Part shown: piece by piece, positions 3,001 through 55,895 of the stretch | How positions within the stretch are numbered: the first letter of the stretch is position 1 | Layout: each line of letters begins with the position of its first letter | Source of the DNA: Macrostomum hystrix | Lineage: Eukaryota; Animalia; Platyhelminthes | Direction of reading: 5' to 3' | DNA: 64,000 nt | Assembly: GCA_950097015.1 (NCBI GenBank) | Contig: CATNEN010000025.1 | Coordinates: 6,448,001 to 6,512,000 of the forward strand | Notes under the pieces: model-generated | The model's database searches: none | The model's input: only the letters and a program-made list of their open reading frames with translations | What the model was told of the DNA's origin: nothing | Translations under genes and position numbers: made by a program

Positions 3001-4464
3001 CTGGCGCCAGCTAGTCCGCCGCCGACTCTGACGCCCTCCGAGGCCAAACGGCTGGCTCGCAGCGAGGAGGCTCAATTGCGCGAGTTAAGGATATTTTTGC
3101 GCGACACCTGCAATAAGCTGGCCAGGTATGACAATTGTCGGTGTCTGGGATACTTATAAAAATGTAGGTTTCTGGGATAATTCTTCGGGATTAAGTTTCT
3201 GGGGGATAACTCTAAGATAATTCAGGTTTTTAGGAAATTTTGGTTTCTGTAATAATTCTGGTTTTGTGATAAATTCAGGTTTTGGGATTAGTTCACGATT
3301 CTGGGATAATTAGAAACTATCTAGCCTCTGGGAGTGGTTCGTTTTTTGGGATAATTTATATAATTGTTGGTTTCCAAGTGTCTTAGAAGAGCTGCCTAAG
3401 AATAGGTGTATATGAGTATAATTATGAAAAGGTAATAAAAATTTACCAGCAATTGTAAACGCTTATTTGTACGTCGGACCCGTCTCAAACACAGGGACCG
3501 CCGCTTCTTCGTGTTCGCCAAGCCCGTCACGGACGTGGCCGACTACTACGACATCATCAAGAATCCGATGGATTTGGCAACCGTCATGGACAAGATCGAC
3601 CGCGGCCAATACTGCTGCGCCGAGGAATTCCTAGCCGACATCGACTTGATCGCGCGCAATGCCCTGGAGTACAATCCAGTTACTGACGACGAATCCGTTG
3701 CCATTCGGCATCGGGCCTGCGCCCTGCGAGACGTTGCCCAGGCTATTGTCAAGGCCGAGATGGACTCGGACTTCGAGGACGACTGTCGACGAATTAGAGA
3801 TCGCCGACGCGACGATGCCACGGCGGCGTCGACGACAACGACCACGGCTATCGAGGCGTCGACGAAGAAAACGACTGCGTCAGCCGCTGCGAATGCTGCG
3901 ACAATCGGCTGTAATAGCGTAGCAGCTCGGCATCCGCACGTCAACAATGTCAGCAACGGCGGCCTTGTTCACAATGTCTCCCGCGCCGATCGAGCCAGTC
4001 GCCGCTCCGCTGCCCCGACCGTCGCCGCGGCCGTAACAACCGCTGCTTCGACAGCGTCAGCTGAGACCGCATCGGCTGAACTAGAAGCAGCACCGACTGC
4101 CGCGCCTTCGGCCTGCAGCCCGACAACTCGCCGGTCCGTCTCGGCTTCCGCCGGATCGCCGCCGGCCCTGTCGCCGCATCGGCCGCCGACGCCTCAGCCG
4201 ATGTCGTCGCCATCGCGTCAAGAGGCCGCGATTCGAGCCCGACTGCAGAGCCTGTTGGACCAGCTGGTTGACCGCACCAATGGCCTGGCCAGGCTGCAGT
4301 TGGACTCCGTCTTCACGCGCCTATCTGACCGGCTGGCCGATTTGCGAACCAACATGGCGTCCTTGACAACCAATGCTAGTCGAGATCAGCAGCAACTGTT
4401 TGCTGGCCGCATCTGCAGCGCTATTGAAGAGTGTGTGAATGAGATTTCACCCAACTCTGACTGA
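38..4464 (+). CDS. ATAD2: ATAD2-family AAA+ ATPase with bromodomain (3 exons; 5' end may lie upstream of the window)
   Basis: Exons 38-1480, 1945-3125, 3495-4464 with GT-AG introns, joining LDARGE|VIVIGATNR and LAR|DRRFFVFAKPV. Walker A GPPGCGKT, Walker B IIFFDEID, arginine finger ALRRPGRFDRE, degenerate second AAA domain, bromodomain (YYDIIKNPMDL...LEYNP). The frame is open from position 2. Confidence 0.95.
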
Positions 4465-5042
4465 GCCAATCAAGAATCTTCTGCTCAGTGTAACTCAACA
4501 AAAGCAATTATAAAATCTGGATAATATTTCGTCGCTACTACTTATAAATAGTAGATCAATAAGCGTAATTAGTAGTGATTATAAAGTTTATCGCGTTTAG
4601 TATATTATTAATATATATGTAATAGTTCGTTGGAATATTTGTGAAACCAAGTATTCGTTTTTAAATGCCAATTTCTCTTTCTTTAACGTAACAAAATTAC
4701 TAAGTAGGTAATTAACTAATTTAATTAGTTTATATTTTTGTTGTTGTCGTTACTGGCTTAACCTAGGATTTTCTGGTGCTTTAATCAAGTATCAAATTTC
4801 TTGCAGGAGTAGCGTATTGTTTGTGTGGATAAGTTTTTTAGTCAGCACGCACCTGTGTTCGTGTGAAACCATGCTCCTTTTTAAATTAGGTAACGCTTAT
4901 TTTTCACGCGTAAAAAACAAGGCTTTTAATTCATTTTCCTAGCGTTTTATTATTACTTATTTAAAGGTTTTGCTGTTCTTTTAATTTGAAAAAATTGATT
5001 TTTAAATCGAGCTCATGAAGGATTAGATTGAGAATCAAAAAC

Positions 5043-5475
5043 TTCCTGAAGTATTGGATAGATAGCGGAAGCTCCCTGAAGTATTGGATAGATAGCGGAA
5101 GCTCCCTGAAGTATTGGATAGATAGCGGAAGCTCTCTGGAGTATTGGATAGATAGCGGAAGCTCTCTGGAGTATTGGATAGATAGCGGAAGCTCTCTGGA
5201 GTATTGGATAGATAGCGGAAGCTCTCTGGAGTATTGGATAGATAGCGGAAGCTCCCTGAAGTATTGGATAGATAGCGGAAGCTCTCTGGAGTATTGGATA
5301 GATAGCGGAAGCTCCCTGAAGTATTGGATAGATAGCGGAAGCTCCCTGAAGTATTGGATAGATAGCGGAAGCTCCCTGAAGTATTGGATAGATAGCGGAA
5401 GCTCCCTGAAGTATTGGATAGATAGCGGAAGCTCCCTGAAGTATTGGATAGATAGCGGAAGCTCTCTGGAGTATT
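5043..5475. repeat. Minisatellite, 30-bp unit GAAGTATTGGATAGATAGCGGAAGCTCCCT, ~14 copies
   Basis: Direct tandem periodicity with no spacers. Confidence 0.95.
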
Positions 5476-6069
5476 TAATGCATTGGCCCCAGAATATTAG
5501 TGACTAGTATCAGACCATGCAATTATTAGATCCCTAATGACGTTATATGCATTCTTATAATAATTGTCGTTAAGTTGCTCAAACAGTTGCTAAGAGTGCG
5601 TATTTAATTGCATGCCAAACATCGCCTTCAAACTGCTAAAATAGAGCAGTACGATTCGCTAGTTCACTCATTGCTTGTCCGTCTGTCACTGCACTTTCTG
5701 CTTGTTGTCTGTGTCTTTGTCACCCACCTTTGGTTGAACAGCAAGATCCTCGTTGAAAGAACTCGTTTTAAAATATGCATTGCACAGTTTTAAATTCCGA
5801 ACGCGTGTCAATTTTTAGTCCTAACTTTAAATATAACGACTTTAATCTGTTCTCTGAGGGTGGCAGCCGCATGGCTGTCAACAATATCCCAAACTAATCC
5901 CTACCAGCCACCGCTGTCTCGATCTATAGGCATTTAAAACAACCAGTTTTACACGCTTGTCATTTGTGTGAAAGCACGTTTTAAAATCCTAGATATGCGC
6001 TGCCTTTTTGTTTTTTTTTTGCTTTTTTTCCTGCTCCAGATACTAAGAATCCACAGGATTGGATCTAGG

Positions 6070-6720
6070 ATCGCTTGCAGATCCTCCGGATTATTCGCTA
6101 TCACTTGCAGATCCTCAGGATTATCCGCTATCACTTGCAGATCCTCAGGATTATTCGCTATCACTTGCAGATCCTCAGGATTATCCGCTATCACTTGCAG
6201 ATACTCAGGATTATTCGCTATCACTTGCAGATCCTCAGGATTATCCGCAATTACTTACAGATCCTCAGGATTATCCGCAATTACTTACAGATCCTCAGGA
6301 TTATCCGCAATCACTTGCAGATACTCAGGATTATCCACTATCATTTGCAAATCCTCAAGATTATCCGCAATTACTTACAGATCCTCAGGATTATCCGCAA
6401 TCAATTGCAGATACTCAGGATTATCCACTATCATTTGCAAATCCTCAAGATTATCCGCAATTACTTACAGATCCTCAGGATTATCCGCAATCACTTGCAG
6501 ATCTTCGGGATTATCCACTATCACTTGCAAATCCTCAAGATTATCCGCAATTACTTACAGATCCTCAGGATTATTCGCTATCACTTGCAGATACTCAGGA
6601 TTATCCGCTATCACTTGAAGATCCTCAGGATTATCCGCTATCACTTACCGATACTCAGGATTATCCGCTATCACTTGCAGATCCTCAGGGTTATCCGCTA
6701 TCACTTGCAGATCCTCATCT
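6070..6720. repeat. Minisatellite, 30-bp unit GCAGATCCTCAGGATTATCCGCTATCACTT, ~21 copies
   Basis: Direct tandem periodicity; it generates the repetitive ORFs in all three + frames. Confidence 0.95.
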
Positions 6721-13649: not shown

Positions 13650-15678
13650 ATGCGCAGTCGCCGAATATCCAGTCAGCACGGTGGCACCTTCGGTCATCGA
13701 AAGCGAAGCATCCTACAGGCCCTCCAGCAGCAGCAGCAGCAGCAGCAGTCACCTCCGCCCCCAACCTCACTCCACCCAGGTCGAATCAGTAAGCTAGAAT
13801 CGGTCGCCAACGGTTTAGTCGGCCCCAGTCCGGAGGAACTCGTTGACGAAGGCAAAGCGCTGTGCCTCGAATACGTCAGCCACCGGCTCAGGCGCAGCGG
13901 TCTCCTGACGCAGAGCCAGCTGGACATCCTCGGCCCGCCAGTTGAATATAGCGAAGTTGGCGAAGAGGTGCGCCTAGTTGGCGAAGAGCTGGAGGCCATG
14001 TACCCGGACCTGTTCAAGAATGTGCACCGCCAGCTCAACTTGGCCATGCACTCCGACGAGGTCGCCCGGCGCAGCTTCGCCATGTTCGCCGACCGGCTCT
14101 GCGGCGACGGCATTCACTGGGGCAAAATTGTCGCCCTATTCGCCATGGCCGGCGCCTTCGCGGCCGACTGCGCCAGCAAAGGCCATCCGGACTACGCGCA
14201 CAAGATTGTGGACACATTCGGCCTGTTTGTGTCCACCAGGCTGTGTCCGTGGCTAAGTCAACAGGGCGGCTGGATTATAGTTGAGTACTGATTCTATTCG
14301 CATTGTTACCTTTCCTACTAGTTGTTTTAGCTTGTTAACTGAGTACACCTGTCCTAATTGGGCCAGATGTGCATCCGACATCTGTACGGCGGTTCTGCAG
14401 TCCATGGACTATGGGGAAGCCACACCCACCCTCAATTACCCCAGCTGATGCTGGTACCCATTTAACGGCTGGGTGAACTGAAGCAATGCAGAGTTAAGTG
14501 TCTTTCTAACAGACACAAATGGTTCCAGTGGAGTCGGGAATCGAACCCCCGACCTTCAAGACGTGATTCCGACGCTCTACTTACTAGTCAACAACCTCCT
14601 GTGTTCAAAAAAAGCTCATTACCGTTTAGATCTTCATAAGCGCAAATATAATACTGTTAGCAACAAAATGTGGGAGTATTTGTACGTGTACCATAGGTCT
14701 TATAGATTAAACAGCTGCTGGCCAGTTTATTGGGCTCCCATGCAGGGTTGGTCTGACGCTAAGCGGAAGTCTTAGGTAGAAACTCAATTTCTAGATTTAG
14801 ATTTGACTGCCCAATCTGTGCCTAATCTTTCCCAGGCACCGCAGCTGACTCTCTCTCAGAAATTCTCGCAGTATATTTCGCTTCCTTCCTTATGGGTTTA
14901 CAATCGCATTCATTCTGGTGCTTTAATGAACTACTCGGATTAATTCTAGCTACGGTAGCATAAACTCATTCCCAGAATATTTATTTCTCAGTTCTTAATT
15001 CTCAGTCGAATATTTCACGCACTGTTTCATCGTATGCTTCTCTGTGTTCCCTTCTTTATGATCTATTTTGTCCGTTTGAGCACAAATGTCTCTTTTACCT
15101 CTTTCATAGACTACTTTACTTTTGATATAAGATATCTATTCGTTTCTCTTTCTCTCTCTCTCCCTCTCTCTCCCTCTCTCTACCTCTCTCTCCCTCTCTC
15201 TCTGCCTCTCTCTCTGCCTCTCTCCCCCTCTTCCGCGTCTGGAGTTGCCATGGTTCGAATCCTGATTTCAATTTTTTCGATACATATCGGAATCGATTCC
15301 AACATCAGATTTTTGAAATTCAATGGGCAGTGTCCTCTCTCCTCTCTCCCACTCTCTCTCTCTCCCTCTCTCCCTCTCTCTCTCCCTCTCTCTACCTCTC
15401 TCTCTCCCTCCCTCTCCTCCTCTGCCTCCCTCTCCTTCCGTGTCTAGCATCAGTCTTCAGTTTTCGCTCCAAATCGTATTTGGGTTCAGGATTAAGCTAA
15501 TAAAAATACTCATTTTAAAATGTAGCGTAATTTAATTTAATCCGTCTTTGTCTTTGTCTTTGTTTTCCAGCCACAAGTGACCCGCAGCAACAAAGCCAGC
15601 CAGGACGAGGCCGCAACGTGGATCTGCGCTTCCCTGGCTGCACTGCTAGTCCTGGCTGGCGTTCTGTTATGCTTTTAA
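13650..15678 (+). CDS. BOK: BOK-like Bcl-2 family protein with C-terminal tail anchor
   Basis: Exon 13650-14279 carries BH4 (EELVDEGKALCLEYVSHRLRRSG), BH3 (VGEELEAMYP), BH1 of the BOK type (HWGKIVALF) and BH2 (WLSQQGGW). A phase-0 splice (GTTGAG 14280 ... TTTTCCAG 15570) joins exon 15571-15678 encoding the TM tail WICASLAALLVLAGVLLCF-stop. Confidence 0.88.
14342..14600 (-). mobile_element. tRNA-derived SINE, family A (CORE-like central domain), in BOK intron
   Basis: Reverse-complement homolog of 19860-20170; B box GGTTCGATTCC intact. Confidence 0.8.
15234..15440 (+). mobile_element. 5'-truncated copy of the hammerhead-bearing repeat (family C), starting at the ribozyme junction
   Basis: CGCGTC-TGGAGTTGCCATGGTTCGAATCC...CAATGGGCAGTGTCC plus a CT-rich tail; homologous to 29010-29146 and 29335-29490 (-). 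Lacks the CTGATGA core. Confidence 0.8.
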
Positions 15679-19859: not shown

Positions 19860-20170
19860 CAGAGGTTGTAGCCTAGTGGTTAGGGCGTCGGACTCACGAC
19901 TTGAAGGTCGGGGGTTCGATTCCCGACTCCACTGGAACAATTTGCGTCCTTTAGCAAGACACTCAACTCTGCATTGCTTCAGTTCACCCAGCTGTTAAAT
20001 GGGTACCAGCATCAGCTGGGATAATTGAAGGTGGGTGTGGCGTCCCCCCAGTCCGTGGACTGAACAGCCGTACGCAGCCTTCAGATGCGCCGCGCATTAG
20101 CTGCGGCTGTGCTGTCGGCTGCACATCTGACCCAATTGGGGCAGGTGTAATCAATTATTATTATTATTAT
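19860..20170 (+). mobile_element. Full-length tRNA-derived SINE, family A (tRNA head, CORE-like domain, (TTA)n tail)
   Basis: A box TAGCCTAGTGG, B box GGTTCGATTCC, CORE-like GTCCTTTAGCAAGACACTCAAC...CTGTTAAATGGG, (TTA)n tail, and a 14-bp TSD with one mismatch, TATTATC(T/G)AACGCA, at 19826-19839 and 20165-20178. Confidence 0.88.
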
Positions 20171-25491: not shown

Positions 25492-28400
25492 ATGACGAAT
25501 CAGAGCTCACCAGAACCGGCCTCTGTCGAGTCCCCTGCAGAAGAAAACTCGCCTTTGACTCCACGGACAGCCGTCGACGCCGCTACGGAAATCGCGGTCG
25601 ACGAATTCCAAGTCGAAGTGGAAATCGATGAGCGAGAAAGTTGGGGCACCAAAATCGACTTCCTGCTGTCAATCATTGGATTCGCCGTGGATCTGGCCAA
25701 TGTCTGGCGGTTTCCATACCTTTGCTACAAGTATGGCGGAGGCGCCTTCCTACTGCCCTACTTCCTCATGAACATCTTCCAGGTTGGTGCTATTCAAGGC
25801 ATGGTTGCACTTCCTGCACTCCCTTCACTCCCTGCACTCCCTTCACTCCCTTCACTCCCTGCACTCCCTGCACTCCCTTCACTTCCTGCACTCCCTGCAC
25901 TCCCTTCACTTCCTGCACTCCCTTCTCTCTCTACACTCCCTGCACTTCCCCCATTCCCTGCACTCCATAAAGTCACTTTACCCATCACTCCCTACCTTCC
26001 CTTGGACTCCATAAATTCCTTAAATTCCAAGCACTCATTACATTCCCATTAATCCCTACACTACCTGTATTCCTTACTCTATATAATCCTTAATAAATTG
26101 CCTACATTTCACACACTGTTCACCGCTTCCCTAGGCGGTGCCACTGTTCTACATGGAGCTTGTACTTGGCCAGGTGAATCAGCACGGCCCGATCCGGGTT
26201 TGGGACATCTGCCCGTTGGCTCGCGGCATAGGACTGGCCCAGAACCTCATGACCTATTTAGTGGCCTTCTATTACAATGTCATCATAGCGTGGTGCTTTC
26301 TGTTTCTATTCAACTCGTTCTCCATGACCACGTTGCCGTGGATGAAGTGCGACAACGCCTTCAATACGGAGTGGTGCGTCACTGTGGAGCAATACAAGAA
26401 TCTGACTGCACAGAACCGCAGCGCCAAATATGTGCTGGCTTCCGAGGAGTTCTTCGAGTGAGAGCCTCAAGGCTGGCGTGTACTTTTAGCTCGCCTATTG
26501 AATTACTAGGTATATTTCAAGCCAGTTAGGTATAGCCAACGCGTACCAAGTACAAATAACACCAGAAAGGTATAATCAACTCTTATCAGGTATAATTAAT
26601 CCCAGTAAGGTATAATCAACTCTTATCAGGTATAATTAATCCCAGTAAGGTATAATCAACTCTTATCAGGTATAATTAATCCCAGTAAGGTATAATCAAC
26701 TCTTATCAGGTATATTTAATCTCAGTCAGGTATAATTAACCCTTATGAGGTACAATTAACCCCCAGTCAGGTATGATCAAACCTTATCAGGTATAATTAA
26801 CCCTTATGAGGTACAATTAACCCCCAGTCAGGTATGATCAAACCTTATCAGGTATAATTAATGCTAATCAGGCATTATATATACTCTTTTCAGATACAAT
26901 AAGCCTCAGACAGGTGTAGTCAACCCTTATCAGGTTCAATAAAACCTAGTCAAGTATAATTAACCTGACTGACCCGGTTCCGCGGGTGCAAACCAAGTTC
27001 ACCTTTGAAACTTTCAAATTTTCAAATCTTCGTTTTTAACAAGCTTGAAAGGAAGAGGTTTTTGCTACTAGTCAACTGTAAGCGTGTAAGATTGATGTTT
27101 GCACCAATAAATTTTTTATTGGTTCCTAGGTGACAAATGTGAGTCACAAGTGATTGATTAGTTATTATATATAAAAATTCAGGTGACTTTTGATTGTTTA
27201 AAACGAATTTGCAGTGCGAACTGTGACATAAAGTACAGTAAAAATAAATTAAAATGTTCGTGTCTCTTCCAGACTACTTCCAGAAAAAAAAGTTGTGCAT
27301 AATGTATGCGATAGACTTAATCAGTGCATTATGACATGATTTAAAATACAGAACACAGTCATGTAATCAAACACATAAATACCAGACGCGGTGTCCTTGG
27401 CATCCACGAGAGCGTCGGCTTGAGCAGCCTGGGCCAGCCGCGCCTTTTGCTTGTCATCTGCTGCATGATCGTGTTCACCTGCCTGTACTTCTCCCTGTGG
27501 AAAGGTGTGAAAACCTCCGGCAAGGTCGTGTATATCACGGCCACAATGCCCTACATTCTGTTGGCCATTCTGCTAGGAAACGGTGCGAGACTGCCTGGAG
27601 CCAGCAAGGGCATCAAGTACTTTATTAGTCCCGACCTATCCAAGCTCAACTCAATTGATGTAAGTGCTTTATCCGAAATCTCAAGCATGATTTGTGTGAG
27701 CCAAGAAAATCTAGATCTTAATTGAAAAAATTAAAATGATAGACGTTTTTGGGGGTTTGGAGTGGTTTGTTCTAGAGAGCAGCTCTAGCTAATGAGCATC
27801 GAGATAAGGTTTGAGATTTTTTGTTTAAGATCGGCTCTAGCCAATGAGCGCAAAGATGCAAAGATAAGGGCTGAGATTTAAGAGGTGGTTTTTTTCAAGA
27901 TCAGCTCTAGCCAATCAGCGTAAAGATTACGGTTAAGATTCTAAATTAGGGGTGTTCAGCTCTAGCCAATAAGCGTCAGGAAAAGGGTTGAGATTTGTGG
28001 GTGGCTTGTTTAAGATCAGCTCTAGCCAATAAGCGTCAAGATAAGGGATGAGACTTGTGGGTGGCTTGTTTAAGATAAGCTCTTAGCCAATGAGCGTCAA
28101 GATTTAAGATTCGAAGCTAGTGCTAGCCGATGTGCGATGTGAAAGAGGTGTATATTTAGATTGGCATTGTTAATACGGAGAAAAAAATATGAATGAACTT
28201 TTAGCCGTGGATAGAGGCCGCCATCCAGGTGTTCTACTCAACAGGCGCCGGCTTCGGAGTTCACCTTGCCTACGCCAGCTACAGCAGGCCCAGAAACAAT
28301 TGCTATCGGGACTGCCTCATCACTGCGGCTGCCAATGCGTCTGCCAGCTTCCTAGCTGGCTTTGTGGTGTTCTCCTACCTGGGCTACATGTCCGAGGTCA

Positions 28401-31400
28401 CCGGCAAGCCGGTTGATCAAGTTACAGCTGAAGGTGAGAGAAAACTATTTGTACAGCCAATAGCTGAAACATGTAGCCAATCAGCGATGAGTCAGTTTTT
28501 TGTAAAAGGGCTTTCTAGCCAATCAGCAACAAGTTAGCTTTGAATTCTTTTTAGTGTTAGCATTTTAACAAATCAGAGAATCAGTGAATAGCTAACGGTT
28601 TTTGGATGCTTTGTAATCGGAACATTCGTACAAGAAACCTTATCCGCATGGCAACCGCAACTCCGAATTGCAGGTCCCGGTCTTGTGTTTCAAGTTTATC
28701 CAATTGCCATTGGAACTCTGCCTGTTGCGCCGCTATGGTCCATTCTGTTCTTCTCCCTGCTCATCACTCTTGGACTGGACAGCGCGGTGAGATCAAAGGG
28801 AGGGAGAGAGGGGAGAGAGATAGATAGATGGGGAATAAAGAAACGCAATCAGAGGAGGGAAGAGAGAGAGGTAAAGAGACAGGGAAAAGTGGGGATAGAG
28901 AGAGAGGGGGGGAAAAGATAGAGGGAAATAGAGGAAGAGCAAGAGGGGAAAAGAGAGACGGAGAGAGAGGGGCGAGAGAGAGAGTCGAGAGAGAGGGGTG
29001 AGAGAGAGGGAGAGAGGGAGAGAGAGAGCGGGAGAGAGGAGAGAGGACACTGCCCATTGAATTTCAAAAATCTAATGTTGGAATCTATTCCGATATGTAT
29101 CGAAAAAATTAAAATCAGGATTTGAACCAAGGCAACTCCAGACGCGTTTCGCTCTTATTGGAGCTCATCAGTAGAGTCTAGCCTAGCGCTCTAGCCTTTA
29201 GGCTATAGGCGCTTGTTCAAATCCAGCTTTCAATCTCAACATTTCGTAATCGATTCGGCAGCGCCCCGCAACTCAATCCACACTCACTCAACTCCGTGGC
29301 ACTGACTCGGTCGTACGAGACGCCGGTGCTGGCCTGAGAGAGAGGGAGAGAGGGAGAGAGGGAGAGAGACAGCGGTAGAGAGGAGAGAGGACACTGCCCA
29401 TTGAATTTAAAAAATCTAATGTTGGAATCGATTCCGATATATATCGGAAACATTGAAAGCCGGATTCGAACCAAGGCAACTCCAGACGCGTTTCGCTCTT
29501 TTCGATTTTCGATGAGAGAAAAACGATAAATAGGAGCTAAGAAGCTCCTAATATTGTGCGCTAACCAACCCCCCACCTGCATCTGACAATGGGCCGGGCA
29601 GATGGGAGGCATGGAATGCCTTCTAACCGGAGTCGGCGACCTAATCGAGAAGCCGTTGCGCAAGTACAAAAATGTGCGCGAAATTTTCACCGTCTGCGTC
29701 ATCGCCCTGGCCTTCCTAATGTCGATGTTTCTGTGCACCTCGGTGAGAACTGTCGCACAATTCTATGGGTAAAATCCTTTTGGCTATTATCGCTCACACA
29801 GTGTAGCCATTCACACAGGGCGGCATGTACGTCTGGAATCTGATGAACAATTTCTCCGCCGGCCTGTCGATCATTGTTGTGGCATTTGCGCAGGCTACAG
29901 CTGTGTCTTGGCTGTATGGTAAGGCTTATTTGCATGTGTTATCAGTGACACTCGTTCACGAGCTGTCTAAGGGCGAAATGAACTTCAATTGCGTGTGATC
30001 CATGGGCTATCCACACAATGTAGTCTATTGTCTATCCACACAGTGTAGTCTATTGTCTATCCACACAGTGTAGTCTATTGTCTATCCACACAGTGTAGTC
30101 TATTGTCTATCCACACAGTGTAGTCTATTGTCTATCCACACAGTGTAGTCTATTGTCTATCCACACAGTGTAGTCTATTGTCTATCCACACAGTGTAGTC
30201 TATTGTCTATCAACACAGTGTAGTCTATTGTCTATCCACACAGTGTAGTCTATTGTCTATCCACACAGTGTAGTCTATGGTCTATCCACACAGTGTAGTC
30301 TATGGTCTATCCACACAGTGTAATCTATGGTCTATCCACACAGTGTAGTCTATTGTCTATCCACACAGTGTAGTCTATTGTCTATCCACACAGTGTAGTC
30401 TATTGTCTATCCACACAGTGTAGTCTATTGTCTATCCACACAATGTAGTCTATTGTCTATCCACACAGTGTAGTCTATTGTCTATCCACACAGTGTAGTC
30501 TATTGTCTATCCACACAGTGTAGTCTATTGTCTATCCACACAGTGTAGTCTATTGTCTATCCACACAGTGTAGTCTATTGTCTATCCACACAGTGTAGTC
30601 TATGGTCTATCCACACAGTGTAGTCTATGGTCTATCCACACAGTGTAGTCTATGGTCTATCCACACAGTGTAGTCTATGGTCTATCCACACAGTGTAGTC
30701 TATTGTCTATCCACACAGTGTAGTCTATGGTCTATCCACACAGTGTAGTCTATTGTCTATCCACACAATGTAGTCTATTGTCTATCCACACAGTGTAGTC
30801 TATTGTCTATCCACACAGTGTAGTCTATGGTCTATCCACACAGTGTAGTCTATTGTCTATCCACACAGTGTAGTCTATGGTCTATCCACACAGTGTAGTC
30901 TATGGGCTATCCACACAGTGTAGTCTATTGTCTATCCACACAGGCTATCCACACAGTGTAGTCTATGGTCTATCCACACTGTGTATTCCATGGTCTATCC
31001 ACACAGTATAGTCTATAGTATATCCCACACTGCAGTCTTTAGTCTATCCACACTGGGTTGTCTATGGTCTATCGACACTGTGTGATGTACAGTCTAACCA
31101 CACACATCCTTCTGATAACCGCAGGCTTGGACCAGTTCTGCAAGGACATCAAGGATAATCTAGGCTTTTCACCAGGAATTTATTGGCGCCTATGTTGGAA
31201 ATTCGTGTCGCCAGTTTTCATTCTGGTAAGAGAAGCGTCGGTAATATTTGCGCAACTCGATTGTTATTAAAGCTAATTTGCGCGCATCTTCTAGGTGATT
31301 ATCGTGTTCAACTGCGTGATCCTGATGGACTCGTCCAGTTTTCTGTACTTCTACAAGTACACCGAGTATCATCCGGAGCTGTTTTCGAATCGTACAGCTG

Positions 31401-37396: not shown

Positions 37397-55895
<18,499 letters not shown>

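Follow-up and report, generated by a model that had tools for sequence, protein, structure and literature searches.

The segment 29000-29502 on the minus strand of the window, that is, of the whole 64-kb stretch of DNA that was analysed, is best explained as a young retroelement, non-coding and hammerhead-bearing, whose unit is ~336 nt long and which entered a CT-rich array by Penelope-like integration, a reading to which we give a probability of about 0.8. The element most likely works like, and is, a Penelope-associated animal non-LTR retrozyme. The original prediction did not know the family as a described one; elements of this kind are already in the literature (PMC7229834, PMC4209133, bioRxiv 10.64898/2026.07.22.740005), and the family is a further member that differs in its layout, its target, the form of its hammerhead and its tRNA-gene-like boxes. 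For the annotation of the window, this stretch is a repeat insertion in an intron and not a gene.

The locus was recognised by its two ribozyme junctions. The 23-mer AAGAGCGAAACGCGTCTGGAGTT matches the 64-kb window twice, at 29156-29134 and 29500-29478, both on the minus strand, where chance would give no match at all. The corresponding GUC^U sites lie at 29141/29140 and 29485/29484, so the second junction sits exactly 344 nt upstream of the first on the same strand, as had been reported from the sequence at the outset. The features of the locus are listed below in the direction of the minus strand, followed by a further family copy elsewhere in the window; unit positions are counted from position 1 at AGGCC over a unit length of about 336 nt.

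29336-29502, minus strand: upstream 5′-truncated copy, from unit position 178 to the unit end, starting inside stem II at 29502/29500.
29452-29471, minus strand: right arm of a 20-bp helix in the upstream copy, variant CCGGCUUUC, pairing with the left arm at 20/20 positions.
29000-29335, minus strand: full (downstream) copy, covering unit positions 1 to about 336, with 97% identity to the unit of locus L029 that serves as reference.
29215-29234, minus strand: left arm of the 20-bp helix, unit positions 102-121.
29195-29205, minus strand: A-box-like motif TAGCCTAAAGG, where most family copies have TAGCCTAATGG.
29134-29189, minus strand: predicted complete type I hammerhead of the downstream copy, with cleavage after C29141.
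29118-29128, minus strand: B-box-like motif GGTTCAAATCC, followed by a T6 run at 29108-29103.
29108-29127, minus strand: right arm of the 20-bp helix in the downstream copy, for which local pairing with 29234-29215 is possible and would enclose the hammerhead.
28800-28999, minus strand (GA-rich on the plus strand): CT-rich array downstream of the element, its presumed target, reaching the SNF exon that ends near 28795.
15234-15380, plus strand: third family copy, strongly 5′-truncated, starting 5 nt before the cleavage-site position, with CT-rich arrays on both sides.

The downstream copy contains all of the core residues, CUGAUGA and GAAA, together with a cleavable GUC^N site, surrounded by three helices that are open at helix I (type I, clan CL00010, HH9-like). 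Stem I has 6 bp (ACUCUA/UGGAGU) with an outer extension (CUAGG/CUUGG) and is followed by CUGAUGA, stem II has 4 bp (GCUC/GAGC) and the loop CAAUAA, and GAAA is followed by a short palindromic stem III, ACGCGU, that contains the site. The Rfam model Hammerhead_HH9 matched this copy with 38.4 bits (E 6e-8), below its gathering score of 52, mainly because helix III has no loop. At gathering thresholds, Rfam gave zero ribozymes in the window, and the hammerhead match surfaces only with E-value thresholds. The upstream copy starts inside stem II and so kept just GAAA and the site; CUGAUGA is missing. It otherwise consists of the 3′ half of stem II, the B-box-like motif GGTTCGAATCC and a CT tract whose length (29389-29336) exceeds the usual one by 8 nt. 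Helix III comes to 1-2 bp in the monomer and to 6 bp in dimer-type pairing. When the downstream core (29192-29142) and the upstream half-site (29502-29470) were cofolded in silico, stems I and II and a 6-bp ACGCGU/ACGCGU stem III were predicted at -25.2 kcal/mol, which agrees with the full hammerhead originally proposed for this pair.

A search of the 220-Mb, 42-contig eukaryotic assembly placed the locus within a repeat family. A first look at the repeat around the ribozyme gave at least 129 candidates, 40 of which were scored and found to be 95-98% identical, and junction motifs with up to 2 mismatches numbered 99 genome-wide compared to 0 for a reversed-pattern control. Family copies are spread over at least 24 contigs, and all 69 intact cores of this form in the genome are members of the window family. 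For the census, 64 of about 89 loci were read and each was mapped onto one L029 unit, whose landmarks are the following.

Unit positions 102-121: left helix arm.
Unit positions 131-141: A-box-like motif.
Unit position 165: CUGAUGA.
After unit position 195: cleavage.
Unit positions 208-218: B-box-like motif, overlapping the right helix arm at 209-228.
Unit positions 228-233: T6 run.
Unit positions 289 to about 336: CT tract.

The segment 29335-29215 corresponds to unit positions 1-121 and was found in all copies long enough to reach it. A chance juxtaposition of two copies, with 29330-29215 missing from the rest of the family, had been considered in the original prediction; the presence of this segment in every such copy instead bears out a real repeating unit, although of ~336 nt, of a hammerhead-bearing non-autonomous retroelement. 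Since 336 nt, about 45 of them taken up by the CT tract, leave no room for RT or EN, the element is non-coding and non-autonomous. The GC content of the family unit is about 49-50%. The hammerhead is fully intact in 33 of the 58 copies that span it, and the scattered single changes in the remaining copies fit post-insertion decay, as expected. An A-box-like motif is present in 43/51 copies and the B box GGTTCGANTCC in 47/51, with a conserved run of five or six T right after the B box and upstream of the CT tract in 49/51. An exact-pattern scan of metagenome contigs gave zero copies of the family, a literature search with the literal sequence gave no paper carrying it, and a literature search on flatworm and planarian retrozymes gave nothing relevant. 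With ~100 young, cleanly bounded copies in a chromosome-scale assembly, the family is useful for the question of how partial tandems of Penelope-type elements and animal retrozymes originate and how these elements come to target simple repeats.

The ends of the copies carry much of the argument for the mode of integration. Throughout the 64-locus census, the 3′ end lies inside the conserved CT tract, and the 5′ ends are variable, giving copies of less than 1 to 1.63 units. In a subset of 27 loci chosen solely for having a junction, the copy extends to position 1 at 10 and is truncated at the other 17, in 14 cases with its 5′ end between unit positions 128 and 181. Among the copies that reach position 1, 19/34 run seamlessly upstream into the 3′ part of a preceding unit. 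These upstream partial units start between positions 125 and about 297, and because none starts before 125, the longest copy amounts to 1.63 units. The limit near position 125 may reflect the 5′ end of the RNA or an obstacle that the structure of helix plus ribozyme poses to reverse transcription, and a polymerase III start would be predicted at about the same place, near unit positions 120-125. At L004, the 5′ start coincides exactly with the cleavage-site position. A second junction is included in six census loci, the window among them. Junction pairs, as derived from a genome-wide listing of single junctions, are spaced 300-503 nt apart with a mode of 336, and the 344 nt of the window equals 336 nt plus one extra 8-nt CT repeat. 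Two cores in this partial-plus-full layout occur only at L026, L029, L051 and L053, and a few loci (L026, L029) have two complete ribozymes 336 nt apart. Tandem arrays of the unit, which had been anticipated, are not what the census contains: no multimeric array was present and 1.63 units is the maximum span. Inverted copies, which often flank Penelope-like elements, were not seen.

A strong preference for CT-rich sequence was apparent at the insertion sites. Measured 50-140 nt from the element on its sense strand, a C+T content of at least 85% in at least one flank was found at 55/64 loci, compared to 0.12% of background windows of 80 nt. Many insertions are flanked on either side by one and the same CT-rich minisatellite, and at L004, with the element bordering a short CT run, a direct repeat of 94 nt that is not satellite sequence represents a long target duplication. 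In the window, matches to SNF-family exons lie on the plus strand at 25633-28795, 29602-29772, 29825-29998 and 31058-31270, and, as judged from these matches, the element and its CT-rich flank occupy most of a predicted intron of ~800 nt in an SNF/SLC6 transporter gene, antisense to the gene. High 5′ truncation, a truncated copy followed by a full one and a bias for microsatellites are known for Penelope-like elements (PMC8557442), and it is on the 5′ truncation, the full copy preceded by a truncated one and the microsatellite bias of the present family that Penelope-like integration is proposed.

The two halves of the window element need not have arrived together. Private variants were counted by column majority over a 123-nt non-coding segment, and at L029 and at L053 both halves have such variants in common, indicating that each of these pairs came from one template. 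The window halves have zero private variants in common, which goes against their original treatment as one unit, and the pair may therefore derive from two templates, either by two insertions or by a template switch. It is possible, although we do not favour it, that an older 5′-truncated copy was hit in its CT tail by a later full-length copy, and that the 344-nt unit is a target-driven juxtaposition. The upstream half carries 8 private changes and the downstream half 3, the upstream half has a G at the CCGG position that is seen in few other copies, and identity between the two halves is 90.6%, compared to 97-98% between the downstream copy and other copies. The CT-tract tail of the element is itself a target of the preferred type, and independent truncated copies do lie next to one another at L052, L054, L056 and L057. 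Against two insertions, the 8 versus 3 split lacks significance (binomial p about 0.2), the same pattern would follow from a single event with a switch between two template RNAs, and L029 and L053 show that pairs with common private variants exist. The seamless partial-plus-full layout, moreover, recurs in more than half of the copies that reach position 1, despite only ~100 copies and many CT arrays in which to land. The closest genomic match of the upstream copy is 95% identical, and no closer subfamily was found.

The retroelement reading is also preferred to a tRNA-derived SINE, in which a polymerase III transcript would be copied by a LINE with the hammerhead as a passenger, as was once proposed for schistosome Sm-alpha. 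The frequent B box and A-box-like motifs noted above, a T-run where the terminator of a tRNA gene would be expected, and the combination of 5′ truncation with a long target duplication, which is compatible with LINE-type integration, are all in its favour. We nevertheless consider it improbable, given that the likeness extends to box-level motifs only, with no tRNA from ARAGORN and no Rfam tRNA match in the stretch at E up to 10, and that partial tandems characterise Penelope-like elements and not LINEs (PMC8557442). Polymerase III would moreover be expected to terminate at the T6 run (unit positions 228-233), about 100 nt short of the CT tract in which all copies end, which makes it improbable that the mobile RNA is a simple transcript of this polymerase.

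Duplication at the DNA level, by unequal exchange or slippage in a CT-rich array and with no RNA intermediate, would suit the variable CT tract lengths, the range of junction spacings and the five identical truncated copies within a single 2.28-kb higher-order repeat of the (GAGAGTGAGG)n array on contig 38, but is very improbable in view of a unit end/start junction that is constant across many unlinked loci while the 5′ breakpoints vary, the target duplication at L004 and the dispersal of copies over contigs. The contig 38 cluster was also considered as a longer element and was rejected as such, being a segmental repeat inside a minisatellite.

Returning to the Penelope-associated retrozyme, the RNA of the unit is predicted to be strongly structured, as had been proposed. 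The minimum free energy fold of the 344-nt site-to-site unit is rod-like, at -127.4 kcal/mol as a linear molecule (z -4.8) and -122.8 as a circle (z -4.7). In this rod, the 5′ UGGAGU pairs with ACUCUA of the core, the 20-bp helix prolongs that pairing, and a G/U-rich stretch (unit positions 40-75) is the partner of the CU tract. About 68% of the bases of the unit RNA are paired in the predicted folds. For 336-nt units, the sense strand gave lower z values than the antisense strand at both L029 (-4.1 vs -2.2) and L026 (-3.6 vs -0.6). The arms of the helix at 29471-29452 and 29234-29215 pair at 20/20 positions, 18 Watson-Crick and 2 G-U, compared to 18 on the opposite strand, so that the helix is fully paired only on the ribozyme strand, just as was first noted. 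This perfect pairing is peculiar to the window locus, with 18/20 pairs typical of the family, and results from a CCGGC variant found only in the upstream copy of the window.

With regard to mechanism, copying would proceed by target-primed reverse transcription of the Penelope-like type, in which the nicked GA-rich strand of the CT array would serve as the primer by annealing to the CU tract in the RNA of the element. To pass the unit boundary, the reverse transcriptase would use a template that is circular or multimeric, or would switch templates. Since a monomer cut by the hammerhead cannot template an intact 195/196 junction, the templates would be uncleaved or religated RNAs. It is conceivable, though unlikely, that a 336-nt rod RNA is circularised after cleavage and that this circle is the integration template, primed at the CU tract and copied more than once round. 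If true, this would explain, for an element of Penelope type, the constant CT end, the seamless crossing of both the ligation site and the unit boundary, and the variable stops of up to 1.63 units.

The hammerhead would be the canonical type I of animals, in which stem III is very short and palindromic and which would work best as a dimer of neighbouring motifs. Short palindromic helix III and dimer action have been reported for the hammerheads of Penelope-like elements (PMC4209133), and the canonical animal form with a short helix III is described, in the part of PMC4209133 that cites Forster et al. 1988, as cleaving poorly alone and well as a dimer in which the cores cut each other's site. 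With a single core in the window, the stable 6-bp helix III of dimer type would serve the upstream site only, and the downstream site would be left to a weak monomer fold with a stem III of 1-2 bp or to a core acting in trans. This disfavours, though it allows, the release of a 344-nt RNA here, and the locus would be a poor source: of the two cuts needed for the release originally proposed, the upstream one is matched by a stable predicted dimer-type fold, and the downstream one, with its 1-2-bp stem III, is not. A rod-like RNA of 336 nt, linear or circular, would more likely come from the rare two-motif loci such as L029, and if a 336-nt circular RNA exists, these few loci are directly testable as sources.

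A Penelope-like partner that shares the ends of the element had also been suggested. Penelope-like copies with RT and GIY-YIG are present in the same genome, with the motifs read from translation; Pfam gave no match for the RT fragment beside the L007 copy or for the 865-aa open frame of L044. One Penelope-like clade (a fragment in L031, and L048, L049 and L050) lies in CT arrays with the same polarity as the window element and carries, close to its 3′ end, a minimal hammerhead. Its copies are all broken, with open frames of at most 356 aa, and no intact partner that targets CT arrays was found; the intact Penelope-like family of the genome inserts in (TCTA)n instead. A blastn comparison of the unit with seven Penelope-like loci gave CT-tract matches only. 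Local alignment identified a 24-nt motif common to the unit and the 3′ ends of L048 and L050, with a marginal score of 25 compared to a null of 17.5 +/- 2.2 (z about 3.3), and this marginal motif is the extent of the sequence likeness on which homology of the window unit to a pseudo-LTR could be based.

In comparison with known systems, the element shares with Penelope-like elements the 5′ truncation, the truncated copy in the same orientation before a full copy, the bias for insertion into simple repeats and the hammerhead in a repeated terminal part (PMC4209133, PMC8557442; bioRxiv 10.64898/2026.07.22.740005). It differs in having no ORF and in the lack of an inverted flanking copy among those seen. 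Its hammerhead is canonical (helix I of 6 bp, helix II of 4 bp, loop 2 near that of the Rfam HH9 model), in contrast to the minimal hammerheads of the Penelope-like copies of this genome. Repeats with a type I hammerhead in animals are classed as retrozymes that are non-autonomous and related to the terminal repeats of Penelope (PMC7229834; bioRxiv 10.64898/2026.07.22.740005). With the animal non-LTR retrozymes (PMC7229834), the family has in common a canonical type I hammerhead in a non-coding unit that is a few hundred nt long, a highly self-paired unit RNA and target duplications of more than 4 bp, and with those of amphibians a helix III that is too short and favours dimer action. The described animal retrozymes form tandem repeats of 150-450 bp, from dimers to multimers, whereas the window family extends to 1.63 units at most with two junctions at ~6/64 loci. 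Their GC content is below 45-50%, and the 49-50% of the window family is not clearly below this range. They occur as unit-length RNA, both linear and circular, whereas the present family is known from DNA sequence and predicted folds. The family is thus set apart from described retrozymes by partial tandems in place of arrays, by CT-rich targets, by its canonical hammerhead and by the position of the ribozyme between tRNA-gene-like boxes.

Schistosome Sm-alpha and Sj-alpha (Ferbeyre et al. 1998 and Laha et al. 2000, in PMC8490949) are similar as far as they are described there, being SINE-like elements of ~335 bp with a type I hammerhead in a flatworm-type genome. Relative to that description, the window ribozyme is distinguished by lying between A-box-like and B-box-like motifs and by a tail that is a CT tract. 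The double hammerheads of newt satellite 2 and avocado sunblotch viroid, as summarised in PMC4209133 from Forster et al. 1988, likewise have a short palindromic helix III that is extended when two motifs pair. According to that summary, each core cuts the other's site in those systems, whereas the window locus has one core, by which one site would be served.

In the main window insertion of the hammerhead-bearing family of ~336-nt units, an A-box-like motif, the hammerhead, a B-box-like motif and a T6 run form a compact module (29103-29205, minus strand). This module, conserved in 43-49 of 51 family copies, resembles a tRNA gene plus terminator, yet it goes unrecognized by tRNA models. The sole match in the window to reach the Rfam gathering level was a tRNA, for which the Rfam alignment contains a shortened T stem:

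19862-19931, plus strand: tRNA (Rfam, 31.8 bits)

Family copies also vary in the 20-bp helix formed by arms 102-121 and 209-228 of the reference unit. Across 57 copies, the mismatch site of this helix at unit position ~219 (window 29461) was more variable than its neighbouring positions, with T changed to G in four copies and to A in two, and each of these changes re-forms a pair with U110. The site may mark a subfamily or be a mutational hot spot, or selection may favour the helix.

A third family copy in the window is flanked on both sides by CT-rich arrays:

15234-15380, plus strand: family copy, strongly 5'-truncated, its first base 5 nt ahead of the cleavage-site position

Truncated copies were also found elsewhere in the genome at locus L058 (G000:C38:21522800-21529400), where a (GAGAGTGAGG)n array holds five identical copies spanning unit positions 112-342. 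Spacings between these copies alternate between 1589 nt and 680-690 nt, a pattern that points to segmental duplication of one insertion within the minisatellite as the origin of the cluster. Within the window, the following array, in which GC and AT skew are both strongly negative, is flanked on each side by further 20-nt arrays:

38738-44797, plus strand: array of a pyrimidine-rich 20-nt unit (6 kb, ~300 copies)

Penelope-like copies were present at other loci of the assembly:

L044 (G000:C1:5546500-5556499), 4380-6560: 5'-truncated copy with an open RT and GIY-YIG frame and a minimal hammerhead
L031, 345-1745: second clade
L048, 4779-6000: second clade
L049, 4525-6275: second clade
L050, 5564-3715, minus strand: second clade

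The L044 copy has (TCTA)n at both flanks, and read-through of this microsatellite gives its open frame a spurious N-terminal extension of 316 aa. The second clade consists of broken copies only, every one of them surrounded by CT-rich arrays, and at their 3' ends the minimal hammerhead is followed by a GTCAGTG-type motif immediately ahead of the CT run.
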